Source: Paramoeba atlantica
Taxonomy: Eukaryota; Protista; Discosea
DNA length: 64,000 nt
Direction of reading: 5' to 3'
NCBI GenBank assembly: GCA_977017575.1
Contig: CDRNVI010000050.1
Coordinates: 41,506 to 105,505, forward strand
Part shown: positions 15,756 through 64,000 of the stretch, one piece after another
How the letters are laid out: every line of letters begins with the position of its first letter
How positions within the stretch are numbered: position 1 is the first letter of the stretch
Position numbers and translations under genes: made by a program
Notes under the pieces: model-generated
Databases searched by the model: none
Seen by the model: only the letters and a program-made list of their open reading frames with translations
Told to the model about the DNA's origin: nothing

Positions 15756-16460
15756 ATGAACACGAGCATTCCACTGAGGGCTGCAAAGGTGCGAGGAAAC
15801 TTGCCGCCTCCAGAATATCAACTTGCGCATCTCATTGAAAACGTGAAACTTCATCGGCCGTCATGGAATATAGACACTCCCGCTTGTAGGTGGAGTGGAA
15901 TCACATGCGATGAGGAAGGCCGTGTTACTGAAATTGAATGGCATCGATTCCGCCTTTCGGGGATTCTTCGGTGGGAATTTCTCCCTCATGCTCTGGTTCT
16001 TTTAAAACTCTACAGTAATGGACTGGAAGGTGAGGTACCTTTTACGGAGCTGCCACCGAAGCTTCTTAATTTCTGCATTGATGGTAATTTTTTTCGTGGA
16101 AAGGCTGACTTCACTGCGCTTCCAGGTAATATGGCCTATATGGTCTTGAGTAACAACAATTTTTCCGGAGAGATCTGTCTCACCAAGTTACCTCAAACTC
16201 TTTATTTGCTTGAATTGGTTAGCAATCAATTCAGTGGGCCGTTGGATTTAACAAACCTTCCTTCCGCAATGAATTCACTTCTTCTAAATAGCAATCGTTT
16301 TCGTGGTCATGTCAGCTTGAGTTCTCTTCCCAAAGGAATGGGTCAACTGGGCTTGGACGGTAACCCGTTTCTGTACGTTAAAGACAGTGCATTCAAGGAG
16401 GAAGCTTTTCGAGTTCCGGGAGGAAATGTAATGGATCTTGTGAAGAAGGTAATTCCTTAA
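15756..16460 (+). CDS. Leucine-rich repeat protein paralog (234 aa; true start ATG 15756)
   Basis: MNTSIPLRAAK start identical to the paralogs; preceded by a pyrimidine tract and AG (ttttcttatttccctag). Confidence 0.9.
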   Translation: MNTSIPLRAAKVRGNLPPPEYQLAHLIENVKLHRPSWNIDTPACRWSGITCDEEGRVTEIEWHRFRLSGILRWEFLPHALVLLKLYSNGLEGEVPFTELPPKLLNFCIDGNFFRGKADFTALPGNMAYMVLSNNNFSGEICLTKLPQTLYLLELVSNQFSGPLDLTNLPSAMNSLLLNSNRFRGHVSLSSLPKGMGQLGLDGNPFLYVKDSAFKEEAFRVPGGNVMDLVKKVIP

Positions 16461-16997
16461 CAATACGCATAGCCATCAAAGTAGACTTTAACGATCGTAC
16501 TTGGGCCCACAAACGTTCCATGAACAAAATTCAGGGAGATACGGAATACAGGTTGGAACTTACTATAATTAAGTGTAATTACGCGACACGTTAATTAAGG
16601 CACATCCCCTTTTAGGTTGAAAATGTCCTGTAATTCTCGAAGACTATATCTTGAAGATTCATTCACTCTCGATTCACAGGATTTATCGACCTGTAATTCA
16701 GTGTCCTTTATTGCAGCGGTTATTTTACATAACTACCGCTCTACCCTCGTTTATTGAAGAAACAAAGTGAACAAAAACAGTGAAAAAATAAAGCTCTCGT
16801 TGGTAATTCTTCACACAGAATAGACTTGGAGTTTTTACCTCCTCTCCTGAACGTTTGTAATCTATGTTCGAAGTTTCCGAACCTCAGTCGCCTGCCCGAG
16901 ACCTTGCGTGACTAAAATCTCCGTTGTTGTCTTTCGATAATTTGACACCAGAACAAGGAACGATCCTCTTCAACCCTTTTTTATTTACCTCTTCTCT

Positions 16998-17136
<139 letters not shown>

Positions 17137-17157
17137 AACACTTTCTCCCCCTCTCTC

Positions 17158-19761: not shown

Positions 19762-20220
19762 GGCGGAGAGCGGGGAGTGGAAGAATAGATATGAGTTTTT
19801 TTGCCTTCGAAGGGGTTTGTATATTTGTGGGGATCAGATAGCAAATAACGAAAGTAAAGCTTTTTCTCATGTGTTTTTTATCTTCAATTTGGGTCTGAAT
19901 TCTTCTTAGAATTTAGTGCCCGTGTTTAAGTTTAAGCATTTGGTTGGCAGCGTTGCTTTTTTTAAGTGACTTCTATTTTTTTGCTTCTTTTAGAAACACG
20001 TTAAATGTGAATAGTAACAATAACAAAAACGTATTTATAGAAAAAATACCTCTTTTCTTACCTCCTTCTTTTTCCTTCTTTCTCTCCTACCCTTTCCTTT
20101 CCTATATCCCCACCCTCTCCCCTATCTTCTTCACCTCTCTCTCTCTTTCTTTTTTATCTCCTAAAAACCCTCTTATACCCCAAAAACCCCTTATACCCTT
20201 ATCCAAGCCTTCTAAATACC

Positions 20221-21576
20221 ATGTCCGACCCCTTATCCTGCCCTCCCCCCTCTTCCTCTTCCCGCTCCGACTGCCTTTCCTGGCTCAACACCGTCCTGGG
20301 ACTCTCCTACACCTCCATCGAGCAATGCGGCTCCGGGGAGGCCTTTGTTTTTTTATTTTCTTATTTAAGCTCCACGCCATGTCCCCGGCACCGGGTCCGC
20401 TCCCCCGTGCGCTCCCCTTCGGAGGCGCTGCATAATTTTAAATTACTGCAAGAGCTGTTTGCGGCAGAGTGTACGACGAAGGAGTTGGAGGTACGCAAAT
20501 TAGCCGCGGGCAACTTTCAGCATAATTTAGAGTTGCTGCAGTGGATGAAGGGGCAGAGTGAGAGGGTAGGAGGGTGGGGGTGGGGGGGAGAGAAAAGGGG
20601 GGGAGAAGAAATCCAACAACAACAACAAATCCAACAAAAACGACAATATGGGGGGCTAGGGGGAATAAAGGAGCTCTCAAGTAGCTCTGGAGGTCGTTTA
20701 GGACGAACCTCTCCGCGGTTGACACGGTCGAGTGTGAATTCGTATCGTGCAGGGAGTGTGGGAAAAAGTAGTCGAGCCCCGAGTGTTGGGGGGACAAGCG
20801 CGGTGGTGGGGATGCAAAAGGAGAGAAGTAAAACCGGGGCGGTGTCCGGACAGCGGGGTTTGTTTTCGTCGTGTTCCTCTGCGCTTCGCACGCCTTTTTC
20901 GAAAATGGGTTCTTATGCGTTGGACGCGCACGGGGAGGGGAATTTTGATTTCGAGCCCAGCATTCGACCACCTCTGCCTTCTTCCTCGTTTGAGACCCCG
21001 CTGGGAAAAGCACTCGGGAGAGTGCGTAGTGCCTCGAGACAGCGTACGGTGCCTTCCGGGAGTTTATCTCAAATGAGCGCCGCCGTAAAGGATAAAAACC
21101 AAAAGGGTGTGCTTCCCCGATCATCGAGAACCCCAACGACATCGAATTTGTCGTATCCCACCCAACGCTCCTCGAGTGTTTCGACAAATCGAACGGGTTT
21201 CATGTCGCGATCGAATGGTTTGAGTAAAAATACGAATGCTGCTGTTTCTTCAAGGGTATCGAGTGTTCGAGAAACTGGAGTACGAGCGAATTTGAGGACA
21301 CAACCACGAACCCCCACGCAAGGCACTTTTTCATCGTCTGTGAGTTCCAATCGTTTTACGAGAGGACCAAGTTTTTCAGGGAATAGCCTAAGTTCTCGAG
21401 GAATGGGAAGAAACGAGGAGGCGTTGCTGCGGTATAAAAAAGAGGCGGAGATGTATCAAAGAAAACTACACGATTTGGTGACCTATTTCAAGGACGAGAC
21501 GTTGTTAGCGCTGCATGATAAAGAGCAGGTTGTGGAACACGCGCGAGAGCTGTTGTCGAGCGCTCCAAATGAGTGA
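20221..21576 (+). CDS. EB1: EB1/RP-family microtubule plus-end protein-like (CH domain, long S/R-rich linker, degenerate EBH)
   Basis: SRSDCLSWLN...IEQCGSG...HNFKLLQ...KLAAGNFQHNLELLQWMK matches the EB1 CH domain; EAEMYQRKLHDL resembles ERDFYxxKLRxIE. Confidence 0.7.
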   Translation: MSDPLSCPPPSSSSRSDCLSWLNTVLGLSYTSIEQCGSGEAFVFLFSYLSSTPCPRHRVRSPVRSPSEALHNFKLLQELFAAECTTKELEVRKLAAGNFQHNLELLQWMKGQSERVGGWGWGGEKRGGEEIQQQQQIQQKRQYGGLGGIKELSSSSGGRLGRTSPRLTRSSVNSYRAGSVGKSSRAPSVGGTSAVVGMQKERSKTGAVSGQRGLFSSCSSALRTPFSKMGSYALDAHGEGNFDFEPSIRPPLPSSSFETPLGKALGRVRSASRQRTVPSGSLSQMSAAVKDKNQKGVLPRSSRTPTTSNLSYPTQRSSSVSTNRTGFMSRSNGLSKNTNAAVSSRVSSVRETGVRANLRTQPRTPTQGTFSSSVSSNRFTRGPSFSGNSLSSRGMGRNEEALLRYKKEAEMYQRKLHDLVTYFKDETLLALHDKEQVVEHARELLSSAPNE

Positions 21577-21964
21577 AAGAGGGGAAAATGTGGTTTATAG
21601 ATATTTTTTTTGAAATCATAAGAAACGAAGGGTGTAGAATATGAAAAAGGGGGAGATATGGTGTTTTATGCTTTTAATGTTATTGGAAATCGAGTGCAAA
21701 GCTTGTTCATGTTACAATTTACAGTACAGGAACATTCTAATATGAAGCGCTGTGATCGCTTACATACTGTAGATAGAAGCTTACAAACTACAGCAACACG
21801 CTTTCCTAAATTTTACAAGCATTGCAGACTTTGAGTTTGTAGTTTTGATGGAGAACGTTGTGGTTCACAACGTTTCAAAACGAACCAATCGATCTCCACC
21901 ATCACAGAAACCAATAGAAAACTCTTTTCTATCCCTTTTCTTCCCCCTCTCACCCCTTACCCCC

Positions 21965-24202
21965 ATGTCACCTCCCCCCTGTATTTTCTTCCCCCACAAA
22001 ACCCACACCACGGAACTCCACAAAGGGTACGGTAAAGTGATTCTCTTTGGGGAACACTTTGTGGTCTACGGCGAGCCCGCACTCGTCGCGGCGGTCTCGG
22101 AGTACACCGCGTGTTCGATTCAAGTGCTGCAATGTCCTGATGCTTCGCTTTTTAGCCAATTTGCTCATAGCAGCGCTCCGTTTTTAAACAACAACTTCGA
22201 AAACACTTCTCCTTCTTTAAACAACAACAGCGATTCATACTTATCCACACTTCCTATAATCCGAATGGAAGTCACGGATCGTCGTCCCGCAGTCCCGGGA
22301 TACAAACACGAGAAACGATTTGAACAACGCAAAGCGCATCGTCTTGTTTTGGAGCATCTCTTTCAAATTTCGCTTTTAGACGTGAATGAAGTTGAAAATA
22401 GAAGTGAAACCAGTGAGGCACCAAAAGACAAGAACAAACGGTTTACCGCATTATTTGACTGGAGTACGGACGAAGGTGGTGAGAGTGAAACGAGCGTAAC
22501 GCCTGTTTCTGTGAGCGGGGATGGTAAACCGAGAAAACCAAACGGTTTGTCGTCGAATGCAGAAAACTTAAAAGTGGCTTCCAACGAATCGGATCGCACT
22601 TCTGCATCGTCAAATACGATTCCAGGAAGCAGAGAGTCGTCTTCTGCATCTTCTTCTGTGCCTTATTCCTCTGTGCCTTCATCTGTGTCTTCTACATCGT
22701 CAAATAACCTTCCAAAAAACACAAAATGGTCTCCTACAAAAGACCCTATCTCCATTTCAGCGTCTTCTCCTCCTCCTTCTTCTTCTCTATCCTCCAAATC
22801 CTCTCTATCCTCCAAATCCTCTCTATCCCCTCAATCCTCTCTATCCTCCAAATCCTCTCTATCCCCTCAATCCTCTCTATCCTCCAAATCCTCTCTATCC
22901 TCCAAATCCTCTCTATCCTCCAAATCCTCTCTATCCCCTCAATCCTCTCTATCCCCTAACTCTTCTCTATCCTCTCAATCTCCTTCCCTCTCTCTCTCCC
23001 TCACCCTCCACGGCCCCCTCACCGCGGTCTCCGGCGTCGGGGCCAGCGCCGCGGACGTCGTCGCCCTCTCCCGCGCCCTCAGCAGTCTCTACGGGCTCGG
23101 CCTCAGCGAGCGCGCGATCAACCGCAGCGGGTACGCCGGGGAGCGCGGGTACCACGGCAACCCCTCGGGCGTGGACAACACGGCCGCGACCTACGGGGGG
23201 GTGCTGCTGTACCGGAGAGGGGGGAGGGGGGGTAGAGGGGATAGAGGAGAAGGAGGTGGAAAGGAAAAGGAAGAAGATGGTGGAAAGAAAGAAGAAGAAG
23301 ATAGAAAGGAAAAAGAAGAAGAAAATAGAAAAGAAGGAGAAGAAGAAGAAGAAGATAGAAAGGAAAAAGAAGAAGATAGAAAAGAAGAAGGCGAAAGTAG
23401 AACAGAAAAAGAAGAAATGGGAAGAGAAGAAGAAACGAAAAGAGTAGAAGAAGACAGAAAGGAAAAAGAAAAAGATAGAAAAGAAAAAAAAACGAGAAAA
23501 GAAGAAGAAACGGGCAACGAAAAAAAGAGCGAAAAAGAGGAAACGAGAAAAGAAGAAAAGGCTAGAAAAGAAGGTGAAAAAGCTATCAAGGAGGAAAGAA
23601 AGGAGGTAGAAATGAAGGAGTATTGGGAAATGGTGAGCAGAATAGAATCCGCCGGGGATACGATCCAAGGCGAGGGATGTTGCTTTACGATACTTCGAGG
23701 AGCACGGAAAAATCGAGGGGAAGCCACACCGAACGATGAGAATACCCAAAAACGAGTTCTTTCTTTGCTAGTTCTCTCGACAGGAATTACCTCGAGTACC
23801 GCACAGGTGGTGGAGGCGGTACGAAGTCGTGCATTAGCTCATCCGTGTTGGTTTTATCAAATTTTGTGCCGTTATCGTGTGGATGTTCTTCTTCCCGTTT
23901 TACATTCGCTGAGTTCCTCTACGATCTCACTCGAAGCTCTGGGAAACGCCATGACAAATAATCACGTATTGCTACAAGACATCGGGGTCTCCTGTGAGGC
24001 CCTGGAATGGATTGTACAAAACGCGACATCCAGAAACGGAGTGCTCGGTGCAAAGCTCTCGGGTACGGGATGTGGTGGTATTGCTGTGGTGTTGTGCTCG
24101 GGGAAAGAACAGCAGAAAAACGTTTCGCGGTTTTTTCGGGAGGCTTGTGATGCATCTGGGGCACATAAAGTGCTTATGTGGGACTATAGCGTAGAGAGCT
24201 AA
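21965..24202 (+). CDS. MVK: Mevalonate kinase (trypanosomatid type) with two large low-complexity insertions (745 aa)
   Basis: GYGKVILFGEHFVVYG, GPLTAVSGVGASAADVVALSRAL, GYHGNPSGVDNTAATYGG, AKLSGTGCGG, all in one frame. Confidence 0.88.
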   Translation: MSPPPCIFFPHKTHTTELHKGYGKVILFGEHFVVYGEPALVAAVSEYTACSIQVLQCPDASLFSQFAHSSAPFLNNNFENTSPSLNNNSDSYLSTLPIIRMEVTDRRPAVPGYKHEKRFEQRKAHRLVLEHLFQISLLDVNEVENRSETSEAPKDKNKRFTALFDWSTDEGGESETSVTPVSVSGDGKPRKPNGLSSNAENLKVASNESDRTSASSNTIPGSRESSSASSSVPYSSVPSSVSSTSSNNLPKNTKWSPTKDPISISASSPPPSSSLSSKSSLSSKSSLSPQSSLSSKSSLSPQSSLSSKSSLSSKSSLSSKSSLSPQSSLSPNSSLSSQSPSLSLSLTLHGPLTAVSGVGASAADVVALSRALSSLYGLGLSERAINRSGYAGERGYHGNPSGVDNTAATYGGVLLYRRGGRGGRGDRGEGGGKEKEEDGGKKEEEDRKEKEEENRKEGEEEEEDRKEKEEDRKEEGESRTEKEEMGREEETKRVEEDRKEKEKDRKEKKTRKEEETGNEKKSEKEETRKEEKARKEGEKAIKEERKEVEMKEYWEMVSRIESAGDTIQGEGCCFTILRGARKNRGEATPNDENTQKRVLSLLVLSTGITSSTAQVVEAVRSRALAHPCWFYQILCRYRVDVLLPVLHSLSSSTISLEALGNAMTNNHVLLQDIGVSCEALEWIVQNATSRNGVLGAKLSGTGCGGIAVVLCSGKEQQKNVSRFFREACDASGAHKVLMWDYSVES

Positions 24203-24649: not shown

Positions 24650-25690
24650 AAGCTTTTCTTTTTTAGGCTCTTCGTTAAACGCGGTGGTTGTTTTCAACTT
24701 AGAAGTCCCTCATGCTACGCGCTCCGCGTTGAAAACTACCACCGCGTTTAACGAAGAGCCTAAAAAAGAAAATTTGGCCTGGAAAGCTAAAGAAAACACA
24801 AGGATTATGGCCAAAATTAGCCGATTTTCAGGTAAAAATGGGGTGATTTTTGCGTATTCTTGCTCTCAGAGCACTAAATCTTGTATTTGCGTGTGAAAAA
24901 TCACTCGTAGGCGTGAATGAAAGCCTACTAAACGTATTGGGCAGAGAATGCGACTCCAACCACACCATTCTTTTGACATCAAAAGACCCCATTAGGTCCG
25001 AAAATTATTTTTTCGCACTTTTTGGTCAAAAACGGGCTATTGTGGGAGGCGTGCCACGGCTCCACGAAGTGATATCTTGCGAAAACAACTGCGCAGAAAG
25101 CTAGTATAGGTCCCAAACTGTCAAAATACAATAGGGCAAAAAGGTTGAAAAAATATTTTTTTTACCGTTTTTTTCGCCAAGTTGAATTTTTTTTCCGAAA
25201 AAATCCGAACTTGGCGGACCCGTTCTTTCAACATCCGAACTTGGCGAACGCGGGGGGTCACCCCCGGGTAGGGGGGTGGAAAATGCGCGCCAAGATCCCG
25301 GCCACCGCTGCTGCGGGTTTTTTTCTAAAAACCAAACTCCTAAAACACGTTTTAGGAGTCGATTTTGGAAAAATAAAATTTTTACTTTTTTCCGGGTCCA
25401 AAAAAAATTTTTTTGGTCATCCCAAAAAATTCGGAATTTTTGACCTTGTCGGACCCCTCCAGCGCGTACCAGGGGGGGGGGGGGTACACACAGGCGGTGG
25501 GGGTGGAACGTCATCGCCGCGGCCTACTCTACCACTTCCCTGCGCTCGATTTCGAAAATCAAGATTTTCAAAAAGCGACTTGTGCCACCCCCCGATGGAC
25601 CCCCATTTTTTTCAATTTTTTTTAAAATTTTGGACCACCGGAGCCCCCTTTTATAAATATACCGGAGCCCCCTTTTTATATATAAAATAT
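24650..25690 (+). repeat. Variant copy of the long-hairpin repeat family (extra module ttaggagtcgattttggaaaa...gaccttgtcggacccc)
   Basis: Palindrome at ~24662-24765, body homologous to other copies; the extra module recurs at ~28750-28850, 52100-52270 and 55980-56150. Confidence 0.8.
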
Positions 25691-26444: not shown

Positions 26445-29400
26445 TTTTTTAAGCTCTTCGTTAAACGCGGTGGTTGCTTTCAACTTAGAAGTCACTCATG
26501 CTGCGCGCTTCGCGTTGAAAACTACCGCCGCGTTTAACGAAGAGCCTAAAAAAGAAAATTTAGCCTGGAAAACGGAAAGATTATAGCCAAAGATAGCCGA
26601 ATTTCGGGTACAAATGGGTTCATTTTCTCGTAGTTTTGCTGTCAGAGCACTCAATCCGACATTTGCGCGTGGGAAATCACTCGCAGGCATGAATGAAAGC
26701 CTACCGAACGTATTGGGTAGAGAATGCGACTCCAACCATACCATTCTTTCGACACAAAAATGCCCCTTTAGGTCCGAAAAATACTTTTTCACCTTTTTTA
26801 GTCAAAAATGGGTCATTTTGGGGGGCGCACCACAGTTAGAAGAAGTGATACCTTGCGAAAACAACTGCGTAGAAAGTTAGTGTAGGTCCCAAACTATCAA
26901 AGTACAATAGGGGAAACGATTTTGGAAAAATATTTTTTTTGTCATTTTTTTCGCCAAGTTGAAATTTTTTTCAAAACTTTTTTTTCCGAAAAAATCCGAA
27001 CTTGGCGGACCCGTCCTGCGGATACGCGGGGGGGTCACCCCCGGGTAGGGGGGTGGAAAATGCGCGCCAAGACCCCGGCTACCCTTTCTGCGGTTTTTTT
27101 TCGAAAACTAATTTTTTCGAAAAAATTTGCTCGACCATGCCCCCCCCCTGGACCCCCCCCTGGACCACCCCCATGGACCCCCCATTTTTTTCAAATCATT
27201 TTTTTCAGTTTTGGACCACCGGAGCCCCCTTTTATATTTTTTTCTTCTATTATATTACTGTGTTCCCCTTTATATTTTCACTGTTTTTGTTCACTTTTTT
27301 TTCAATAATCGAGTGTAGAGCGGTAGTTTTACAACCACCGCAATTTAGGCTCTTCGTTAAACGCGGTGGTTGCTTTCAACTTAGAAGTCACTCATGCTGC
27401 GCGCTTCGCGTTGAAAACTACCGCCGCGTTTAACGAAGAGCCTAAAAAAGAAAATTTAGCCTGGAAAACGGAAAGATTATAGCCAAAGATAGCCGAATTT
27501 CGGGTACAAATGGGTTCATTTTCGCGTAGTTTTGCTGTCAGAGCACTAAATCCGACATTTGCGCGTGGGAAATCACTCGCAGGCATGAATGAAAGCCTAC
27601 CGAACGTATTGGGTAGAGAATGCGACTCCAACCATACCATTCTTTCGACACAAAAATGCCCCTTTAGGTCCGAAAAATACTTTTTCACCTTCTTTAGTCA
27701 AAAATGGGTCATTTTGGGGGGCGCACCACAGTTAGAAGAAGTGATACCTTGCGAAAACAACTGCGTAGAAAGCTAGTGTAGGTCCCAAACTATCAAAATA
27801 CAATAGGGGAATTTTCTCGACCATGACCCCCCCTGGACCCCCCCCCATGGACCCCCCATTTTTTTCAAATCTTTTTTTTCAGTTTTGGACCACCGGAGCC
27901 CCCTTTTATATTTTTTTCTTCTATTATATTACTGTGTTCCCCTTTATATTTTCACTGTTTTTGTTCACTTTTTTTTCAATAATCGAGTGTAGAGCGGTAG
28001 TTTTACAACCACCGCAATTGCAGCATTAGATCTTGTATACACCAGTTTTCCTTTTTATTCACCATTCGCATGACATCAGAGAATTAAGAAAAGCACAGTT
28101 GGGATTTTATTCGCTTCAAGATTATATGCAATATGTGCGCTCCCTTGCTGGTTTTATATTTCCAGTTATCATATAATTACTTGTAAGTACATTAGAGAAT
28201 TAAGAAAAGCACAGTTGGGATTTTACTCCCGACAGGTAAACTAGTTCTCGTTGTCGTATGTTTCCATCGCAGACGGGTAAACAAGGTCTTGGTTCATTGG
28301 CCCGGCCGGCCCCTCCGTGCGTTCGGTCTCTTATTCCCAAAACAACTACCACCTTCCCCCCCTATTTAGCGGGGGGATTTAGCACATGTTGTGGGGTATG
28401 GAGGCCTCTCGCAACTCCGGGGCCTCACCGGGAGCAAAGGTGAATTTATTTAATTCCATTTTTTGGCAATGTTAAGAACCTAAAATTTCTAGTCAACCTC
28501 AAATTTCGCGAACACCAACCAAAAATGATCATATTTTTTAAGGGGTCAAAATTTTTTTAAGGGCTCGAAAAAAATTTAAGGGCTCGATTTTTTTTCAACT
28601 TTTATGCCAGACAAAGGTGTAGAATTTATGCAATATAAAGGTGCAGCTTAATATGCCATATAAAGGTGAATTATGCAATATAAAGGTGCAGCTTAGTATG
28701 CAATATAAGTGGCCACTTTTTATGCCAGATAAAGGTGCGAGTGGGGTACCCCCCCATGGTACGCGCGGGAGGGGTCCGACAAGGTCAAAAATTCCGAAAA
28801 AAGCAAAAATAATATTTTTCCAAAATCGACTCCTAAACCGCATTTGGAGAGTTTGGGACCTCACCTACCATTCTGCGGCGTTTTTGTCGACAGATTAAGG
28901 GCATCCAAAACGGCCCAAATTCGGTGTAATATTTCGCAATTTTTGCCGAAAAATCGAACTTTTCCCCCCCAAAAAAGTAGATTATTCATGATCTTTTGGA
29001 GATCACCAACTTAGAAGTCACTCATGCTGCGCGCTTCACGTTGAAAACTACCACCGCGTTTAACGAAGAGCCTAAAAAAGAAAAAAATATGCATTATAAA
29101 GGTTACAATTCTTTTTTAGGCTCTTCGTTAAACGCGGTGGTTGTTTTCAACTTAGAAGTCACTCATGCTGCGCGCTTCGCGTTGAAAACTACCGCCGCGT
29201 TTAACGAAGAGCCTAAAAAAGAAAATTTGGCCTGGAAAACGGAAAGATTATAGCCAAAAATAGCCGAATTTCGGGTAAAAATGGGTTCATTTTCGCGTAT
29301 TTTTGCTCTCAGAGCACTCAATCCGACATTTGCGCGTGGAAAATCACTCGTAGGCATGAATGAAAGCCTACCGAACGTATTGGGTAGAGAATACGACTCC

Positions 29401-32400
29401 AACCATACCATTCTTTCGACACAAAAATGCCCCTTTAGGTCCGAAAAATACTTTTTCACCTTTTTTAGTCAAAAATGGGTCATTTTGGGGGGCGCACCAC
29501 AGTTAGAAGAAGTGATACCTTGCGAAAACAACTGCGTAGAAAGTTAGTGTAGGTCCCAAACTATCAAAATACAATAGGGGAAACGATTTTGGAAAAATAT
29601 TTTTTTTGTCATTTTTTTCGCCAAGTTGAAATTTTTTTCAAAACTTTTTTTTCCGAAAAAATCCGAACTTGGCGGACCCGTCCTGCGGATACGCGGGGGG
29701 GTCACCCCCGGGTAGGGGGGTGGAAAATGCGCGCCAAGACCCCGGCTACCCTTTCTGCGGTTTTTTTTCGAAAACTAATTTTTTCGAAAAAATTTGCTCG
29801 ACCATGCCCCCCCCTGGACCCCCCCCCTGGACCACCCCCATGGACCCCCCATTTTTTTCAAATCATTTTTTTCAGTTTTGGACCACCGGAGCCCCCTTTT
29901 ATATTTTTTTCTTCTATTATATTACTGTGTTCCCCTTTATATTTTCACTGTTTTTGTTCACTTTTTTTTCAATAATCGAGTGTAGAGCGGTAGTTTTACA
30001 ACCACCGCAATTTAGGCTCTTCGTTAAACGCGGTGGTTGCTTTCAACTTAGAAGTCACTCATGCTGCGCGCTTCGCGTTGAAAACTACCGCCGCGTTTAA
30101 CGAAGAGCCTAAAAAAGAAAATTTAGCCTGGAAAACGGAAAGATTATAGCCAAAGATAGCCGAATTTCGGGTACAAATGGGTTCATTTTCGCGTAGTTTT
30201 GCTGTCAGAGCACTAAATCCGACATTTGCGCGTGGGAAATCACTCGCAGGCATGAATGAAAGCCTACCGAACGTATTGGGTAGAGAATGCGACTCCAACC
30301 ATACCATTCTTTCGACACAAAAATGCCCCTTTAGGTCCGAAAAATACTTTTTCACCTTCTTTAGTCAAAAATGGGTCATTTTGGGGGGCGCACCACAGTT
30401 AGAAGAAGTGATACCTTGCGAAAACAACTGCGTAGAAAGCTAGTGTAGGTCCCAAACTATCAAAATACAATAGGGGAATTTTCTCGACCATGACCCCCCC
30501 TGGACCCCCCCCCATGGACCCCCCATTTTTTTCAAATCTTTTTTTTCAGTTTTGGACCACCGGAGCCCCCTTTTATATTTTTTTCTTCTATTATATTACT
30601 GTGTTCCCCTTTATATTTTCACTGTTTTTGTTCACTTTTTTTTCAATAATCGAGTGTAGAGCGGTAGTTTTACAACCACCGCAATTGCAGCATTAGATCT
30701 TGTATACACCAGTTTTCCTTTTTATTCACCATTCGCATGACATCAGAGAATTAAGAAAAGCACAGTTGGGATTTTATTCGCTTCAAGATTATATGCAATA
30801 TGTGCGCTCCCTTGCTGGTTTTATATTTCCAGTTATCATATAATTACTTGTAAGTACATTAGAGAATTAAGAAAAGCACAGTTGGGATTTTACTCCCGAC
30901 AGGTAAACTAGTTCTCGTTGTCGTATGTTTCCGTCGCAGACGGGTAAACAAGGTCTCGGTTCATTGGCCCGGCCGGCCCCTCCGTGCGTTCGGTCTCTTA
31001 TTCCCAAAACAACTACCACCTTCCCCCCCTATTTAGCGGGGGGATTTAGCACATGTTGTGGGGTATGGAGGCCTCTCGCAACTCCGGGGCCTCACCGGGA
31101 GCAAAGGTGAATTTATTTAATTCCATTTTTTGGCAATGTTAAGAACCTAAAATTTCTAGTCAACCTCAAATTTCGCGAACACCAACCAAAAATGATCATA
31201 TTTTTTAAGGGGTCAAAATTTTTTTAAGGGCTCGAAAAAAATTTAAGGGCTCGATTTTTTTTCAACTTTTATGCCAGACAAAGGTGTAGAATTTATGCAA
31301 TATAAAGGTGCAGCTTAATATGCCATATAAAGGTGAATTATGCAATATAAAGGTGCAGCTTAGTATGCAATATAAGTGGCCACTTTTTATGCCAGATAAA
31401 GGTGCGAGTGGGGTACCCCCCCATGGTACGCGCGGGAGGGGTCCGACAAGGTCAAAAATTCCGAAAAAAGCAAAAATAATATTTTTCCAAAATCGACTCC
31501 TAAACCGCATTTGGAGAGTTTGGGACCTCACCTACCATTCTGCGGCGTTTTTGTCGACAGATTAAGGGCATCCAAAACGGCCCAAATTCGGTGTAATATT
31601 TCGCAATTTTTGCCGAAAAATCGAACTTTTCCCCCCAAAAAAGTAGATTATTCATGATCTTTTGGAGATCACCAACTTAGAAGTCACTCATGCTGCGCGC
31701 TTCACGTTGAAAACTACCACCGCGTTTAACGAAGAGCCTAAAAAAGAAAAAAATATGCATTATAAAGGTTACAATTCTTTTTTAGGCTCTTCGTTAAACG
31801 CGGTGGTTGTTTTCAACTTAGAAGTCACTCATGCTGCGCGCTTCGCGTTGAAAACTACCGCCGCGTTTAACGAAGAGCCTAAAAAAGAAAATTTGGCCTG
31901 GAAAACGGAAAGATTATAGCCAAAAATAGCCGAATTTCGGGTAAAAATGGGTTCATTTTCGCGTATTTTTGCTCTCAGAGCACTCAATCCGACATTTGCG
32001 CGTGGAAAATCACTCGTAGGCATGAATGAAAGCCTACCGAACGTATTGGGTAGAGAATACGACTCCAACCATACCATTCTTTCGACACAAAAATGCCCCT
32101 TTAGGTCCGAAAAATACTTTTTCACCTTTTTTAGTCAAAAATGGGTCATTTTGGGGGGCGCACCACAGTTAGAAGAAGTGATACCTTGCGAAAACAACTG
32201 CGTAGAAAGTTAGTGTAGGTCCCAAACTATCAAAATACAATAGGGGAAACGATTTTGGAAAAATATTTTTTTTGTCATTTTTTTCGCCAAGTTGAAATTT
32301 TTTTCAAAACTTTTTTTTCCGAAAAAATCCGAACTTGGCGGACCCGTCCTGCGGATACGCGGGGGGGTCACCCCCGGGTAGGGGGGTGGAAAATGCGCGC

Positions 32401-32678
32401 CAAGACCCCGGCTACCCTTTCTGCGGTTTTTTTTCGAAAACTAATTTTTTCGAAAAAATTTGCTCGACCATGCCCCCCCCCTGGACCCCCCCCCTGGACC
32501 ACCCCCATGGACCCCCCATTTTTTTCAAATCATTTTTTTCAGTTTTGGACCACCGGAGCCCCCTTTTATATTTTTTTCTTCTATTATATTACTGTGTTCC
32601 CCTTTATATTTTCACTGTTTTTGTTCACTTTTTTTTCAATAATCGAGTGTAGAGCGGTAGTTTTACAACCACCGCAAT
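26445..32678 (+). repeat. 2,667-bp tandem duplication (~2.3 units), each with head-to-tail long-hairpin repeats
   Basis: Shadow ORFs recur at a constant 2666-2667 offset (26496/29163, 27392/30059, 28258/30925). Repeat copies end at 27344, 28018, 30011, 30685 and 32678. Confidence 0.95.
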
Positions 32679-33069
32679 AAATGTGTTATTGCGGTGGTTG
32701 TATTCTTTTCCAGGCTCTTCGTTAAACGCGGTGGTTGTTTTCAACTTAGAAGGCACCACTGCTGCGCGCTTCGCGTTGAAAGCTACCTCCGCGTTTAACG
32801 AAGAGCCTAGAAAAGAAAAATTTGGAGAACGATGGACAATTTGGAGAACGAAAATTTAGGAGAATGAAAATATAGATTTGGAGAACGAGTAGTACTTTAC
32901 TTGTTAAACAGAACAGTATGGGCTTTTAGAGGAGAAAAAGTGGAGAAGAAAAACATGAAAACGTGCACTGAAAAACCCCCGGAAAACTACGTTTTAGAAA
33001 TTCACTTCTTCGACAAAGAAAAAAACTTTCTTCCTGTATCACTTTTCTTTGTCAATTAATCTTCGCCTT

Positions 33070-52289: not shown

Positions 52290-54025
52290 CCCCCCTAGGC
52301 CCACCGGAAGCCTACCCCCCCTCCCTGGTCCTACCCCCGAACCCAGCGGCGGTACCAGTCCTGTACCGCCGCCTGCGCAATCTGGGCATTCCCTCTCTGG
52401 ATGGCCACCCCGATGGCCATTAAGAGATGGGCGAGACACCCATTCTTGTCCGATGAGTGGGCCCGGGCCACCTTGTTGAGGAAGGTCAAGGTTTCTGGGC
52501 CCGGGACCCTGTACGTGGAGAAGGCCGGAGGGTGGAATCCCATGCCCCTCACCAGCGCCATCTCCTCATGAGAGCGCCTTTTGTTGGCCTCAGCTATCCT
52601 CAGCGTGTGGGGTGGCTCCGCGCCCTCCTTCTCCACGTACGACGAGGCCAGTGGGTTCACAACTGTGACGTCAACCTGGACGATCTTCCTTCCCAGATGG
52701 AAACAGATGTCTGGCCCCCGTCCATTGTCGAACCTCGGCTCGTGGAGGTCCGAAAATCCAAAAAGGAAACCCTCGGCTAGTGGAGGTCCGGGTTGAACCC
52801 ATAATGGACCAAGAGGTTCCGAAACGTCTCTTTGACTTCCTTATGGCGGGAGGCCTGAGTTTTCCCCTTCACCTTCTTGCAGTCCAGTGCGTGTACGCAA
52901 AACTCCTTGCTGAGGGTTGCACCGCACACACACTGGAGCTCAGGCTCCGAGGTCGGGGCAACCAGGTACCGGAGGCGGGCCGCAGTCTCCCACTTTGGAC
53001 CCCGCATGTAGTACTCCGGCCTGTTCGGCAGGGCACACATCCACTTGGTGGAGTGCACATTCTGGATCTGTCGCATGCAGACCAGTTGGATTGCCGTTCG
53101 GGCGTTCCCCAGGGCTGCCGCACAAAGGTTGCGTCGTAGATCTTTGGCAGAAATTTCAGGTGCTATGTCTTGAAGGGCGTTTTTCGCCTTAACCTGCATA
53201 TCCTGGGCCTTGTGCTCGAAGGGGGTGGTCCCCAGGAAATCTGCCGTAAAAAGGTTATTAGTAAACGGCGTTTTCCCCAGGGAACCCATCCCCCCGACCA
53301 GGGCCTCGGCACATGCCATGACGGCCTTATCGACCTGGTCGTTGGCCCTTTTGGTTACCGGAGGCTCATGCGTCCTCACAATGAAGTTCTACCTGGGGCT
53401 TCCGCAGAGCCTCAGGAGGGGCAAGGCGCATTGCCTGCTGATCTCCTTCAATTTCTCGAGGAAGGAGATCACCTTGTTGTTCCTGGAAAGAACCCAATCC
53501 TCTTCCTTGTCCTCGGACTCCCCGATGTACGCCCCCAGGAGTTTTAACCCCCCTGGGGAATGTATCACCCGAGTCCCAGAGAACTCCGTGAAGAATTTTT
53601 CGTGCCTTGTGGCAACTTTACACTTGGCGGCGTTCATCCGTAGTCCGAGGTATTTTAACTCCTCGCTGAGGGCCTCCAGGGATTCCGCGCATACCTTTGG
53701 TTCACCCGCGAAGGTGACGTCATCAAGTTATGCCCAGACCTTGAGTGCGCCTGTGAATTTGGCAGCCACTCGGGCGATCGCCCCCTGAATCCCAATAGCA
53801 AAGAGGATGGGGGCCATGGGGTCCCCTTGTTTTGCCCCCCTTGAGCTCGTGCTGGTCGCCCCTTCCCCTAGATGGGCGGAGCTTTTGGTCCCATAGCTTA
53901 AAATAGGGTTATGCCCTCTATGGGGGGAAGCTTCGGGTCCCGCCTTACGGCCCGGAAGATGGCCGACCTCGAAATGCTATTGAAAGCATTCTCGAGGTCG
54001 GCTGCGACAACTCCAAATCCCCAAA
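52290..54025 (-). mobile_element. 5'-truncated, decayed CRE-like non-LTR retrotransposon (RT + zinc knuckle + RLE)
   Basis: AADLENAFNSISR, GAKQGDPMAP, A*LDD (YLDD mutated to stop), GLKLLG, CxC...HALDC, GPDICFHLGRKIVQVDVTVVNP; homologous to 7748-8736. Confidence 0.85.
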
Positions 54026-54029
54026 AGGG

Positions 54030-54915
54030 GGGGGAGTCCAGGGGGGGGGTCCAGGGGGGGGTCATGGTCGAGCAAATTGTTTATTTCGAAAAAAATAGTT
54101 TTCGAAAACAAACCGCAGAAAGGGTAGCCGGGGTCTTGGCGCGCATTTTCCACCCCCTTACCCGGGGGTGATCCCCCCGCGTATCCGCAGGACGGGTCCG
54201 CCAAATTCGGAATTTTTCGGAAAAAAAAATTTGAAAAAAAATTTCAACTTGGCGAAAAAAATGGCAAAAAAAATATTTTTCCAAAATCGTTTCCCCTATT
54301 GTATTTTGATAGTTTGGGACCTACACTAGCTTGCTCCTCAGTTGTTTTCGCAAGGCATCACTTCTTCTAACCGTGGTGTGGCCCTCAAAATGACACATTT
54401 TTGACTAAAGAAGGTGAAAAAGTATTTTTCGGACCTAAAGGGGCATTTTTGTGTCGAAAGAATCCAATCCAATCCAAATCATTCCGGATTGCTCCGGATG
54501 GTCACTGGCAAGCCAGACCCTTCACAAACAGATTTGGAAGTTCCGAGGCCGACGTCCTCTACCTCTAGTCGAAAGAATGGTATGGTTGGAGTCGAATTCT
54601 CTGCCCAATACGTTTGGTAGGCTTCCATTCATGCCTTAGAGTGTTCCATTCATGCCTTTCAGGCTTTCCATTCATGCCTAAGAGTGATTTCCCACGCGCA
54701 AATGTCGGATTTAGTGCTCTGACAGCAAAAATACGCGAAAATCACCCCATTTTTACCCGAATTTCGGCTATTTTTGGCTATAATCTTTCCGTTTTCCAGG
54801 CTAATTTTCCTTTTATAGGCTCTTTGTTAAACGCGGCGGTAGTTTTCAACGCGAAGCGCGCAGCATGAGTGACTTCTACGTTGAAAACAACCACCGCGTT
54901 TAACGAAGAGCCTAA
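54030..54915 (-). repeat. Long-hairpin repeat copy carrying a SINE insertion
   Basis: Palindrome at ~54815-54915; body colinear with the other copies except for the insert at 54464-54567. Confidence 0.85.
54464..54567 (-). mobile_element. 5'-truncated SINE with 11-bp TSD
   Basis: GTCGAAAGAAT at 54453-54463 and 54568-54578; SINE 3' end with TCCGGA-GCAA-TCCGGA and (GGATT)n tail. Confidence 0.85.
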
Positions 54916-55046
54916 TAGCGTTATTGTATAGCGTTATTTATAGCGTTATAGTGTATAGTGTAATATAGCGTCACTGAATAATATACAGTTCAACTTACCC
55001 TTCTGCTCCAACGTATCCTTCTGCTTTTAACTTGTCTTTACCTACT

Positions 55047-55969
55047 TCAAAGCAGGAATAACTCTCGAAACTTCTGAGGAATCTACGAGTTGAGACATTT
55101 TCGAGGTCGATTATTCAGCTTTCGTGCCGTCTTGCTCACTTCAACTTTCGTCAAATTTTCGAAGGTGTCAGACTTTGAAAGGTATTGACGAACCAAACCG
55201 TTCTTATTTTCGACGGCCCCCTTTTCCCACGAACGATAAGGCTGACAGAAGTAAGACTTACAATTTCATTTTCTATTTGCCTTTTCATGATTCCAAAATT
55301 CGTTTCCATTGTCGTATGTAATAGTCACCATACCGGCGCCTTTTGTTAACGATTTCAAGGCGCACACCGATAGGCACGCGGTTCGGAATCGTGCTCCGGC
55401 CATGTGCTCGACGCTTGTAGGGGCGCTTTCCTCTAATGCGCAGAGCCTTGTGTACGCTACCGCCTGCATCCTTACCCCGTCGGACTAAAAGATAAATTGT
55501 GGAAGTAGACGGGGAGACTCTGTGAACCAAAGATTAAGGTATGGGCCGCTTGCTCTGGGCTATGAAGTTTTTTGAACCGAGCTTTAACTTTTGCTTCGAC
55601 GTCCCCACGAATAATCTGAGGCCTCGTCCCTTTCTTACTCAGGCGATTTCGTACGACGCGATTCGCACGGCCAGCCAAGTAATACTTGCCCCTTTTCTTT
55701 TTTCGTACTAACTCTAGGCAAACAGTGCTGTGAGATTTATTTATAGAACGGGCAATTTCTCTGCGTGTCGATTCGCTCTCACGCATCGTCTGAATGTCTT
55801 GCCGCTCCTGAAGAGTTAATTTTCGATATTTAGGCATATAAGGTGCGAGTTTCGATTAGAAAGAAAAGCTATTATGATAAAATATGTACCTCTTGGTGCA
55901 CTGAGTATGACAATCCTATAAATTGTGGTGCACTGAGTATGACAATTTGGTGCACTGACATTGACAACC
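55047..55969 (-). pseudogene. Decayed IS30-family transposase with a putative end bearing three 20-bp direct repeats
   Basis: HTH LTLQERQDI...SPEQAA; STIY; RVPIGVRLEIVNKRRRYGD; then ITYDNGNEF and YFCQPYRSWEKGAVENKNGLVRQYL...LNNRPRKCL. First catalytic Asp region deleted. ggtgcactgagtatgacaat at 55895, 55927 and (degenerate) 55949. Confidence 0.85.
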
Positions 55970-55974
55970 CACCC

Positions 55975-57720
55975 ACGTTTTAGGAGTCGATTTTGAAAAA
56001 ATAATATTTTTACTTTTTTTTGGGTCAAGAAAAAAATTCTTTTGGTCACCCCAAAATTTTCGGAAATTTTGACCTTGTCGGACCCCTCCTGCGCGTACCA
56101 GGGGGGGTACCCCCAGGGGGGGCGGTCGAAAATTATCGCCGCGGCCTACTCTACTACTTCCCTGCGCTCGATTTCGAAAAGCGAAAAATTCGAAAACAAA
56201 ATTCGGGACGTATGCTCAACCCCCTGGGCTCCCCATTTTTTTGAATTTTTTTTTTCAGTTTTGGACCACCGGGGCCCCCTTTTATATTTTTTTCTTCTAT
56301 TGTACTACTGTGTTTCTCTTTATATTTTCACTGTTTGTGTTCACTTTTTTTTCCATAATCGAGGGTTGAGCGGTAGTTATACAACCACCGCAATCGAGCG
56401 AATGCATCAAAAAAGTGAACAAAAACAGTGAAAATATAAAGGGGAACACAGTAATATAATAGAAGAAAAAAATATAAAAGGGGGCTCCGGTGGACCAAAA
56501 CTGGAAAACAAAATTGAAACAAATGGGGGGTCCATGGGGGGGGGGTCCAGGGGGGGGGGGTCCAGGGGGGGGGTCCAGGGGGGGGGGTCATGGTCGAGCA
56601 AATTTTTTGTTTCGAAAAAAATAGTTTTCGAAAGAAAACCGCAGAAAGGGTAGCCGGGGTCTTGGCGCGCATTTTCCACCCCCCTACGGGGGGGTCATGG
56701 TCGAGCGAAAAAATTAGTTTTCGAAAACAAAACCGCAGAAAGGGTAGCCGGGGTCTTGGCGCGCATTTTCCACCCCCCTACCCGGGGGTGACCCCCCCGC
56801 GTATCCGCAGGACGGGTCCGCCAAGTTCGGATTTTTTCGGAAAAAAAATTTGAAAAAAAAATTCAACTTGGCGAAAAAATGGCAAAAAAAATATTTTTCC
56901 AAAATCGTTTCTCCTATTGTATTTTGATAGTTTGGGACCTACACTAGCTTGCTCCTCAGTTGTTTTCGCAAGGCATCACTTCTTCTAACCGTGGTGCGGC
57001 CCTCAAAATGACACATTTTTGACTAAAAAAGGTGAAAAAGTATTTTTCGAACCTAAAGGGGCATTTTTGTGTCGAAAGAATGGTATGGTTGGAGTCGAAT
57101 TCTCTACCCAATACGTTTGGTAGGCTTCCATTCATGCCTTAGAGTGTTCCATTCATGACTTTCAGGCTTTCCATTCATGCCTAAGAGTGATTTCCCACGC
57201 GCAAATGTCGGATTTAGTGCTCTGACAGCAAAACTACGCGAAAATCACCCCATTTTTACCCGAATTTCGGCTATTTTTGGCTATAATCTTTCCGTTTTCC
57301 AGGCTAAATTTTCTTTTTTAGGCTCTTTGTTGAACGCGGCGGTAGTTTTCAACGCGAAGCGCGCAGCGTGAGTGACTTCTAAGTCCCCCTGGTCCCCCCC
57401 CTGGAGCCCCCCCATGGACCCCCCATTTTTTTCAAAACAAATTTTTCGTTTTGGTCCACTTATATTTTTTTCCTCTATTATATTACTGTGTTCCCCTTTA
57501 TATTTTCACTGTTTTCTGATGCATTCTGATGTGGCGAAAAGGTCTTTAACGGGTGATACCGTTCCAGTTTCGAGGTGGTTTTCCTAAAGTGCCTTTATTA
57601 TCTCCCTTGTCCACTTTAGCCTGGATTATATTACTGTGTTCCTCTTTATATTTTAACTGTTTTTGTTCACTTTTGTTTTAATAATCGAGTGTAGAGCGGT
57701 AGTTTTACAACCACCGCAAT
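55975..57720. repeat. Cluster of long-hairpin repeat fragments in both orientations, with an expanded (GnTCCA) G-run tract
   Basis: CAACCACCGCAAT termini at 56394 and 57720; minus-strand copy ~56400-57380; G-tracts at 56525-56590. Confidence 0.8.
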
Positions 57721-57760
57721 CAATGTGCTATATGCATTATCAAGTGCCGCTTAGTATGCA

Positions 57761-57975
57761 TCAGGGAACCAGCCCCCCTACCCGGCTTACACCTCTTGGG
57801 TGAGCCGTGTTGACGTACAGTTCGTCGACGCAGCGTGTTGGCAACAGCATGTTGGTGCCGCCTTGGACAAGCGGAAACTGGTAGAGGACGTCGGCTTCGG
57901 AACTTCCAAATCTGTCTGTGAAGGGCCTGGCTTGCCAGTGACCATCCGGAGCAATCCGGAACGATTCGGATTTTT
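57761..57975 (+). mobile_element. SINE 3' half (diverged copy)
   Basis: Colinear with 63.56-63.79 kb; ends ccggagcaatccggaacgattcgga plus a T-run; no TSD found. Confidence 0.8.
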
Positions 57976-61667: not shown

Positions 61668-62186
61668 AGTACATGAGGTGGCGGAGTGGCAAGAACTCAA
61701 AGTTTGAAGCACATGGTGCCCAGACGGCGAGTTCAAACCCACTCATCGCAATATCCCCGGCGGCCTCACTCTAAGAGGCTGGGCTGATAACCGACTAGGC
61801 CCAGTACTCGGAGGACCGTCCCGGACCCTCCCCTCAGGGAACCAGCTCCCTTAGTACGGAGGTGGCGGAGTGGCAAGAACTCAAAGTTTGAAGCACATGG
61901 TGCCCAGACGGCGAGTTCAAACCCACTCATCGCAATATCCCCGGCGGCCTCACTCTAAGAGGCTGGGCTGATAACCGACTAGGCCCAGTACTCGGAGGAC
62001 CGTCCCGGACCCTCCCCTCAGGGAACCAGCTCCCTTACCCGGCTTACACCTCTTGGGTAAGCCGTGTTGACGTACAGTTCGTCGGAACTTCCAAATCCGT
62101 CCTCGGAACTTCCAAATCTGTCTGTGAAGGGTCTGGCTTGCCAGTGACCATCCGGAGCAATCCGGAATGATTTGGATTTGGATTTG
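61668..62186 (+). mobile_element. tRNA-headed SINE (duplicated head, internal deletion) with 14-bp TSD
   Basis: GAACCATTGGCATG at 61654-61667 and 62187-62200; heads at 61675 and 61858 with A box TGGCGGAGTGG and B box GAGTTCAAACC; tail (GATTTG)x3. Confidence 0.85.
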
Positions 62187-62264
62187 GAACCATTGGCATG
62201 TATTAGGGACAGGTTGCGACTTACGTGGGCAGGTTTCTCAAAATTTCGGGGCATATGGGTATCG

Positions 62265-62660
62265 GATTTTCCGGATTGCTCCGGAGATAAAGAACTCCGG
62301 ATGGTCACTGGCGAGCCAGACCCTTCACAGACAGATTTGGAAGTTCCGAGGCCGACGTCCTCTACCAGTTTCCGCTTGTCCAAGGCGGCACCAACGTGCT
62401 GTTGCCAACACGCTGCTGGGACGAACTGCACGTCAACACGGCTCACCCAAGAGGGGTAAGCCGGGTAAGGGAGCTGGTTCCCTGAGGGGGGGGGTCCGGG
62501 ACGGTCCTCCGAGTACTGGGCCTATTCGGTTCTCAGCCCAGCCTCTTAGAGTGAGGCCGCCGGGAATATTGCGATGAGCGGGTTTGAACTCGCCGTCTGA
62601 GCACCATGTGCTTCAAACTTTGAATTCTTGCCACTCCGCCACCTCCGCCGCTATCCCCCG
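62265..62660 (-). mobile_element. Full-length tRNA-headed SINE (~396 bp) with 12-bp TSD
   Basis: ATATGGGTATCG at 62253-62264 and 62661-62672; cloverleaf-like head GCGGAGG...TCATCGCA; 3' TCCGGA-GCAA-TCCGGA hairpin. Confidence 0.88.
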
Positions 62661-62745: not shown

Positions 62746-64000
62746 ATGTCGGAATATGCGAGGGGTCGTGCGAACATCATATGGTTTAACAGAAACATTC
62801 CCCATTACAACCGGCATTCTTCAAGGGGATGTCCTCGCTCCCTACCTCTTCGTAATGGTTCTGGATCGTATATTAAGCAAAGCTATTGATTCAAAATCCC
62901 ATGGCATCCTTCTATCACCCAAAGGTACCAAGAGCAGAGGCCTGAGGGAAACACGTCTTACGGATCTAAATTATGCTGATGATCTTCTTTTCTTTTCAGA
63001 TAACAAGGCTGATCTACAGAGTATGATTGAAGATACAGCGGAACAAGCCCTCTCCGCGAACCTAAGAATAGCAGTAGGCCCTGCTAAAACAGCGTGGATG
63101 CAACTAGGAAGGCAACGAGGCCCCGATGAAATGATATCTGATCCTTTGGGGACGGTGCTCAAAGTACTTTCCTATAGGTATCTGGGAAATCTTTTCCATG
63201 AAACTGAACCATTGGCATGAGTACATGAGGTGGCGGAGTGGCAAGAACTCAAAGTTTGAAGCACATGGTGCCCAGACGGCGAGTTCAAACCCACTCATCG
63301 CAATATCCCCGGCGGCCTCACTCTAAGAGGCTGGGCTGATAACCGACTAGGCCCAGTACTCGGAGGACCGTCCCGGACCCTCCCCTCAGGGAACCAGCTC
63401 CCTTAGTACGGAGGTGGCGGAGTGGCAAGAACTCAAAGTTTGAAGCACATGGTGCCCAGACGGCGAGTTCAAACCCACTCATCGCAATATCCCCGGCGGC
63501 CTCACTCTAAGAGGCTGGGCTGATAACCGACTAGGCCCAGTACTCGGAGGACCGTCCCGGACCATCCCCTCAGGGAACCAGCTCCCTTACCCGGCTTACA
63601 CCTTTTGGGTAAGCCGTGTTGACGTACAGTTCGTCCCAGCAGCGTGTTGGCAACAGCACGTTGGTGCCGCCTTGGACAAGCGGAAACTGGTAGAGGACGT
63701 CGGCCTCGGAACTTCCAAATCTGTCTGTGAAGGGTCTGGCTTGCCAGTGACCATCCGGAGTTCTTTATCTCCGGAGCAATCCGGAAAATCCGATACCCAT
63801 ATGCCCCGAAATTTTGAGAAACCTGCCCACGTAAGTCGCAACCTGTCCCTAATACATGCCAATGGTTCCAAATCCAAATCCAAATCATTCCGGATTGCTC
63901 CGGATGGTCACTGGCAAGCCAGACCCTTCACAGACAGATTTGGAAGTTCCGAGGACGGATTTGGAAGTTCCGACGAACTGTACGTCAACACGGCTTACCC
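62746..64000. repeat. Duplication of 61194 onward (offset 1552) whose right part is inverted relative to the first copy
   Basis: 62746-~63630 repeats 61194-~62080; 63796-64000 is the reverse complement of ~62055-62264. Confidence 0.9.

Follow-up and report, generated by a model that had tools for sequence, protein, structure and literature searches.

A decayed IS30-family transposon copy in Paramoeba atlantica and its diversified relatives in the same protist

A transposase pseudogene on the minus strand

The DNA analysed here is a 64,000-nucleotide stretch of a Paramoeba atlantica contig, hereafter the window, in which self-BLAST delimits a foreign stretch of 1058 bp (54916-55973) that is single-copy within the window and surrounded by repeated sequence. 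An earlier note, made from the letters alone, had placed a relic of a bacterial-type IS30 transposase at 55047-55969; the feature is real and lies on the minus strand, but its extent is corrected here to 54916-55973. Reading in three frames recovers four collinear coding pieces of one protein on the minus strand between 55040 and 55840. The first (55472-55837) opens with an ATG start codon and encodes an HTH_38 N-terminus (PF13936, E 1.6e-10, 41 bits versus a Pfam cut-off of 27), the second (55333-55530) contains STSTIY and RSTIPNRVPIGVRLEIVNKRRRYGD, the third (55269-55379) contains TITYDNGNEF, and the fourth (55086-55265) contains PYRSWEKGAVENKNGLVRQY and LNNRPRK. The motifs that had been read as an IS30 signature, STIY and DNGNEF among them, are thereby all accounted for, and the four pieces match the NCBIfam model for IS30 family transposases (NF033563) in collinear order, at profile positions 1-64, 68-132, 188-208 and 213-267, with 18.7, 27.1, 17.2 and 72.3 bits, each below the 80-bit cut-off of the model. 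Translations, Pfam and NCBIfam matches, and a stitched comparison with P0097, an intact protein from a sibling copy, place the IS30-family transposase pseudogene at 55047-55837 on the minus strand, with the original stop codon at 55047-55049. A tblastn search with the four pieces found no second IS30-like copy in the window at the protein level.

The coding sequence is damaged at several points. Relative to sibling copies, one extra base at about 55516 produces a +1 frameshift, and relative to P0097 a deletion of about 157 nt at about 55323 fuses YGD to TITYDNG, removing profile positions 133-187 and leaving the catalytic triad incomplete, because the segment with the first catalytic Asp lies in the deleted part. 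Premature stop codons occupy 55266-55268 and 55083-55085, the latter position being a Trp in a sibling. Both the frameshift and the missing first-Asp segment had been noticed before, and together with the stops and a truncation described below they uphold the description of the locus as a relic. The frameshift, the deletion of the first Asp and the stops make the window copy a pseudogene from which transposase cannot be made; its descent from the IS30 family is unaffected by them.

One end retained, the other lost

Upstream of the gene, a leader at 55838-55893 (minus strand), conserved with sibling L002, connects the start codon to a terminal array at 55894-55968 (minus strand), in which motif and direct-repeat searches locate three motifs, at 55894, 55926 and 55948, separated by 32 and 22 nt. 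The earlier note had seen these as three 20-bp direct repeats; the unit is 21 nt. Two of the motifs are identical and the third carries 3-4 changes, and the three matches in the window compare with 0.01 expected. The outermost unit (55948-55968) belongs to a terminal inverted repeat, and the element terminus itself, at 55960-55973, has the minus-strand sequence GGTGGGTTGTCAAT, the counterpart of GGTGGATTGTCA in sibling copies and of GGTGGATTCA in related bacterial insertion sequences (ISs). Homology to L002 ends at this terminus and the flanks diverge past that base, and the gene-upstream terminus of the window copy is intact. Between the terminus and a host repeat that starts GTTTTAGGAG lie three bases, CAC (55974-55976), which, from a comparison of host repeat starts and of the 3-bp duplications around siblings, may be one copy of a target duplication whose opposite end has been lost.

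On the downstream side, the alignment with L002 continues past the stop codon and a pair of 17-18-nt direct repeats just 3' of it (54991-55025, minus strand; the same pair is at 6334-6369 in L002) into the remnant of a sub-terminal tandem array (54916-54990, minus strand), where three AACGCTATA-type units about 25 bp apart, recovered as direct repeats D2/D3, align to the array at L002:6383-6481. There the alignment gives way to the end of a host hairpin repeat. Some 300 bp are missing from this side, including a downstream triplet of the 21-nt motif, and a motif search found no further copy of that motif elsewhere in the window, the missing triplet included. No inverted repeat is common to both sides of the window copy, because the copy is truncated, and with one end only its mobilisation is very unlikely.

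Host repeats adjoin the copy on both sides, as had been claimed, one ending at 54915 and the other starting at 55975-55977 (self-BLAST). The left neighbour is a 5'-truncated copy of a hairpin repeat family of about 0.9 kb (copy 1; 54027-54915, plus strand), which finishes in a terminal hairpin and CTAA; other copies of the family stop at the same base and are followed by unrelated sequence. A SINE-like insert of about 100 bp (54463-54567) within copy 1 matches 57880-57972, 62098-62366 and 63689-63954. The right neighbour (55977-57384, plus strand) starts GTTTTAGGAGTCG and continues into hairpin-repeat copy 2 (56219-57384), and three other copies share its start point with different upstream DNA. 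Compared with the features of Helitrons, the left repeat has the hairpin-CTAA ending, but runs of A rather than T follow its other copies, and the right repeat lacks an initial TC. Elsewhere in the window, at 26445-32810, the hairpin repeat and a partner form tandem units of 2667 bp, in which the same two ends that flank the relic occur in the same order around a filler of 280 bp.

Sibling copies and the anatomy of complete elements

Protein searches, HMMER among them, with the N-terminal 121-aa piece and then with the sibling proteins P0003 and P0097 recovered eight further loci in ENA assembly ERZ24900291, each on another contig and with different flanks. Ubiquitin hydrolase, TruD, retroelement reverse transcriptases, and Tc1-like and Merlin-like transposases are among their neighbours. 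With the window copy there are at least nine loci in at least four diverged lineages, with 45-67% protein identity between lineages. L002 belongs to the window copy's own subfamily (90-95% nucleotide identity) and is more deleted than it is. A second subfamily includes L004 and L088, both nearly complete; among L003, L004 and L088 there are near-identical pairs at different loci. Intact copies, which the earlier note had thought worth looking for, are represented by L006, which encodes P0097, an intact transposase of 315 aa. P0097 scores 244.8 bits on NF033563 (cut-off 80) over profile positions 1-267, and combines HTH_38 (48.2 bits) with an rve core. Its catalytic triad is D174 (in WEAD), D228 (in YDNG) and E262 (in SVEH), spaced by about 53 and then 33 residues, and these columns are invariant in the alignment; L004 likewise retains all three residues. 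A PDB sequence search with P0097 found no related solved structure.

A complete member of the family measures about 1.4-1.45 kb and carries one gene, whose product is a transposase of about 315 aa with HTH_38 and DD(33)E, between inverted repeats that start GGTGGATTGTCA at both ends, the sibling repeats having the general form (G/T)GTGGATTGTCA... The upstream triplet and its spacing are complete in L001, L002, L004 and L005, with one or two upstream units retained in L003, L088 and L007. At the far end an inverse triplet is present in L002, L003, L004, L007 and L088, and two inverse units in L006. In complete triplets the units are spaced by 22 and 32 nt before the gene and by 60 and 25 nt behind it, and this spacing is conserved despite protein identities of 45-67% between subfamilies.

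Element boundaries were set five bases outside the outermost motif, by the same rule for every copy, and under this rule four of the five complete copies are bordered by perfect 3-bp target duplications: TCA/TCA in L004, ACT/ACT in L088, GTG/GTG in L002 and CCT/CCT in L006. The fifth, L003, has CCA and CCT, which match at two of three positions. These duplications, of a size typical for IS30, are footprints of transposition inside this genome.

Several sibling loci have been altered by further events. At L007:4801-8468 the copy is split, with the downstream triplet 3.5 kb from the gene and the intervening DNA carries, on the opposite strand, a 733-codon ORF of unassigned family, an arrangement that probably represents a nested insertion. 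In the copy at L001:6310-8870 some 105 codons precede an interruption made up of low-complexity sequence and a retroelement with RVT_1 ORFs, and a tyrosine-recombinase gene lies nearby. Transposase genes of other types also occur near IS30-type copies, at L003:152-1111 and L004:8347-9078, one of IS1595/Merlin type and one Tc1-like (DDE_3), and DNA transposons are abundant in this genome.

Bacterial relatives and phylogeny

The closest proteins outside ERZ24900291 share 43-49% identity with P0097, and the best matches in species-representative genomes are mostly from Verrucomicrobiota. For instance, a Verrucomicrobiae metagenome-assembled genome in one 4.2-Mb contig holds three 100% identical copies of a 1214-bp IS30 element (L020, L021 and L022; L020:2907-4120, for example), bounded by inverted repeats beginning GGTGGATTCA and flanked by a CTG duplication. 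Because three identical copies are found in one genome, this bacterial relative is probably active. The nearest metagenomic relative, the IS that encodes P0245, is 1082 bp long (L090:1484-2565) and is bounded by a 30-nt inverted repeat that starts GGTGGATTCAA and includes AGTGCA, with a GCA duplication. Alignment of the protist terminal motif with the inverted repeat of the compact ISs shows that the first eight bases (the GGTGGATT start) and the AGTGCA block are held in common, from which the outermost unit of each triplet is identified as the former inverted repeat of IS30. The other two motif units per end are additions, as are the tandem arrays downstream of the gene.

The protist element and the compact ISs of Verrucomicrobiota and related metagenomic sources have features in common: both have HTH_38 and DD(33)E transposases of about 315-320 aa with 43-49% identity, an inverted repeat that starts GGTGGATT and contains the AGTGCA block, and a 3-bp duplication. 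They differ in that the compact ISs have one inverted repeat of 25-30 nt per end and a length of 1.08-1.2 kb, whereas the protist elements have two extra sub-terminal motif copies per end, downstream tandem arrays and a length of about 1.4-1.45 kb, reside on eukaryotic chromosomes, and encode proteins that a long stem sets apart as a clade of their own. IS30 elements are usually described as compact, prokaryotic and bounded by one inverted repeat at either end, a description that does not fit the protist family.

For tree building, broken copies were stitched, with an X at each break. A careful tree was computed from 73 rows, namely six protist copies and 67 IS30 proteins from bacteria, archaea and metagenomes, and a quick tree from 116 rows, 110 of which were bacterial, archaeal and metagenomic. 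In the 73-row tree, support is 100/100 for a single clade of the six protist copies, inside which L003, L004 and the window copy cluster together (98/90). With support of 100/97 this protist clade is joined to one of 41 rows in which Verrucomicrobiota predominate; the 41-row clade itself reaches only 88/88, and the protist clade is accordingly nested in, or sister to, the Verrucomicrobiota-type clade. Its stem is long, at 0.66 changes per site, and the quick tree agrees with the careful one. The earlier note had raised the prospect of a eukaryotic IS30-like family and had pointed to phylogeny as a check; the single protist clade next to Verrucomicrobiota-type IS30, together with the 3-bp duplications around siblings, bears that prospect out.

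Eukaryotic residence and alternative readings

The contig that carries the window copy is eukaryotic. An SRP RNA of eukaryotic type is present on it at full length, a LINE encodes endonuclease, reverse transcriptase and RNase H (APE-RT-RNase H), and an intron-less ORF of 1251 codons at 11206-14961 encodes an MIF4G protein that a PDB sequence search identifies as a homologue of UPF2 (NMD2). From 11206 to 24202 the ORFs are all on the plus strand. For a ClpB-like ORF, an atlas search gave nothing but bacterial ClpB clusters. Read depth was assessed over 53300-57800 from Logan contigs of four public runs, with 53320-53640 as the unique host flank; the four runs belong to one study, and the sample behind the assembly is possibly among them. 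Depth over the IS30 part was 40-56 against 57 for the flank in run X1, about 79 against 82-83 in X2, 124-155 against 100 in X3 and 4-9 against 3-6 in X4. Run X1 contains pieces identical to the window copy, and all four runs contain a second, more deleted copy with a joint from 55117 to 55413.

These data bear on whether the locus is an assembly chimera in which bacterial DNA was misjoined to protist repeats. Both borders lie in multi-copy repeats, where assembly errors occur, and among the Logan contigs of the four runs, which are short and broken in repeats, none was found to bridge 54915/54916 or 55973-55977. A misjoin is nevertheless highly improbable: the depth equals that of the unique host flank across the four runs, the G+C content of the IS30 stretch (44%) is that of its surroundings, the pseudogene is strongly decayed and merely 43-49% identical to its closest relatives outside the assembly, and the eight siblings sit in varied eukaryotic contexts (UCH, TruD, LINE/RVT, and Tc1-like and Merlin-like genes), with clean 3-bp target duplications around them in eukaryotic DNA. 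Depth parity, the eukaryotic genes on the contig and the eight siblings thus support residence of the window copy in the eukaryote. A single horizontal transfer that was never followed by multiplication, as with the IS5-like element that a bdelloid rotifer carries in single copy, would agree with the presence of one copy within the window, but is just as improbable once the rest of the assembly is taken in, where at least nine loci in at least four lineages of 45-67% protein identity fall into one clade, where near-identical pairs among L003, L004 and L088 occupy separate loci, and where each complete copy has a target duplication of its own and flanks differ between sibling contigs.

A further reading concerns the placement of the relic and would add to, rather than replace, its identification as a dead IS30-family copy: its position could have been set by the host repeats, either because it was captured as filler between tandem, rolling-circle-like hairpin repeats or because host elements landed at or inside it. 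Both borders coincide with host repeat termini (the hairpin and CTAA at 54915, and the repeat start at 55975-55977), the 2667-bp units at 26445-32810 repeat the same two host ends in order around a different 280-bp filler, and no part of the window contains the missing downstream triplet. Against this, the gene-upstream border falls exactly on the element's own terminus, which would be rare under random capture, no second composite of host repeat, IS30 fragment and host repeat occurs within the window, and contigs that skip from 54915/6 to 56409/10 represent other repeat arrangements rather than an empty site; we regard this reading as unlikely, though more probable than the other alternatives. 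That the locus is instead a domesticated or otherwise functional gene, for example one whose N-terminal ORF of 121 codons yields a DNA-binding HTH protein, draws on the open state of that ORF (55472-55837) and its retained HTH_38 domain, but is the least probable reading of all, since the ORF ends at the frameshift with 14 out-of-frame residues, the remainder carries the deletion and stops, and L002, from the same subfamily, is even more deleted.

Comparison with known systems

To our knowledge, eukaryotic counterparts are known for only a few bacterial IS families, namely IS630, IS256, IS1595, IS5 and IS4, together with IS607 by transfer. Sub-terminal arrays of transposase-binding repeats are familiar from eukaryotic cut-and-paste transposons, among them Ac/Ds, En/Spm-CACTA and the P element. 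The protist family resembles these in having short motif copies, inverted, near both ends and outside a single transposase gene, and differs in that their transposases are unrelated to the IS30 type and that its own motif is so far a putative binding site.

When all IS families were searched for in 430 eukaryote genomes, only IS607 was recovered, and no IS30 (Gilbert and Cordaux 2013, PMC3673617), and the same paper cites the single-copy IS5-like element of the rotifer Adineta vaga. Both cases are like the present one in placing prokaryotic IS families in eukaryotic nuclear genomes through horizontal transfer; however, IS607 encodes a serine recombinase and the rotifer element is single-copy, whereas the lineage described here is of the DDE IS30 type, multi-copy, diversified and associated with target duplications. 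Integrases resemble the transposases of IS3, IS481, IS30 and IS630 (Bao et al. 2010, PMC2836005), and Ginger and other rve DNA transposons of eukaryotes (PMC2836005) share with the protist element an RNase H-fold DDE domain of rve type. Ginger elements are nevertheless kin of Gypsy integrases, without the HTH_38 N-terminus and with no match to the IS30 profile, in contrast to the 244.8 bits of P0097 on the IS30 equivalog model. Full-text searches of the literature found no eukaryotic IS30 lineage, and as far as that search extends the protist family is an undescribed variant of IS30.

Proposed origin and decay

With the family membership, anatomy, target duplications, multi-locus distribution and single clade as observed above, we are confident that 54916-55973 is a dead, one-ended copy of an IS30-family DNA transposon, and that the family resides in the nucleus of this protist as several diverged subfamilies. 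Its ancestor would have been a compact IS resembling those that are common in Verrucomicrobiota today, and would have been gained by horizontal transfer, with the direction from bacteria to protist suggested by the overwhelmingly bacterial distribution of the family. The transposase HTH is predicted to bind the repeated motif, which would provide three putative binding sites per end, and movement would have followed IS30 chemistry. The earlier note had likened the upstream repeats to multiple transposase-binding sites, and the inverse triplets of complete siblings, their conserved spacing and the homology of the outermost unit to the inverted repeat of compact ISs agree with such a role. Bacterial IS30 moves via a circular or joined-end intermediate. 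The window copy kept its gene-upstream end and then decayed through the frameshift, the loss of the first Asp and two stops, while its downstream end was lost and the host hairpin repeat came to abut the remainder. Host elements may have landed at or in the copy, with a later deletion removing the rest, or the fragment may have been carried between tandem host repeats.

It is furthermore probable that these copies represent the first eukaryote-resident IS30-derived lineage (for which IS30EU would be a possible name), in which a Verrucomicrobiota-type IS entered the nucleus of a protist, stayed mobile, diversified, and had its ends rebuilt by motif triplication into arrays of candidate binding sites. 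That it stayed mobile there is suggested by the 3-bp target duplications and by the presence of at least one intact transposase. If such a resident and diversified lineage is real, it would add a case, both recent and traceable, in which a transposon of prokaryotes has adapted to the nucleus; the bacterial-type inverted repeat is still recognisable there, and the clear structural change is the multiplication of the ends. It would allow tests of how a bacterial transposase handles chromatin and nuclear entry, and of whether multiplied end sites are an adaptation. The window copy adds a decayed member to the family and shows the erosion of such elements by host repeats.

One further feature of the window concerns target choice. 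Another copy of the right-flank repeat starts at the centre of a perfect palindrome at 25330-25355 (ACTCCTAAAAC AC GTTTTAGGAGT). The IS30 of E. coli prefers palindromic hot spots, and if the IS30-type element went into the centre of such a palindrome, this would by analogy recall that preference.
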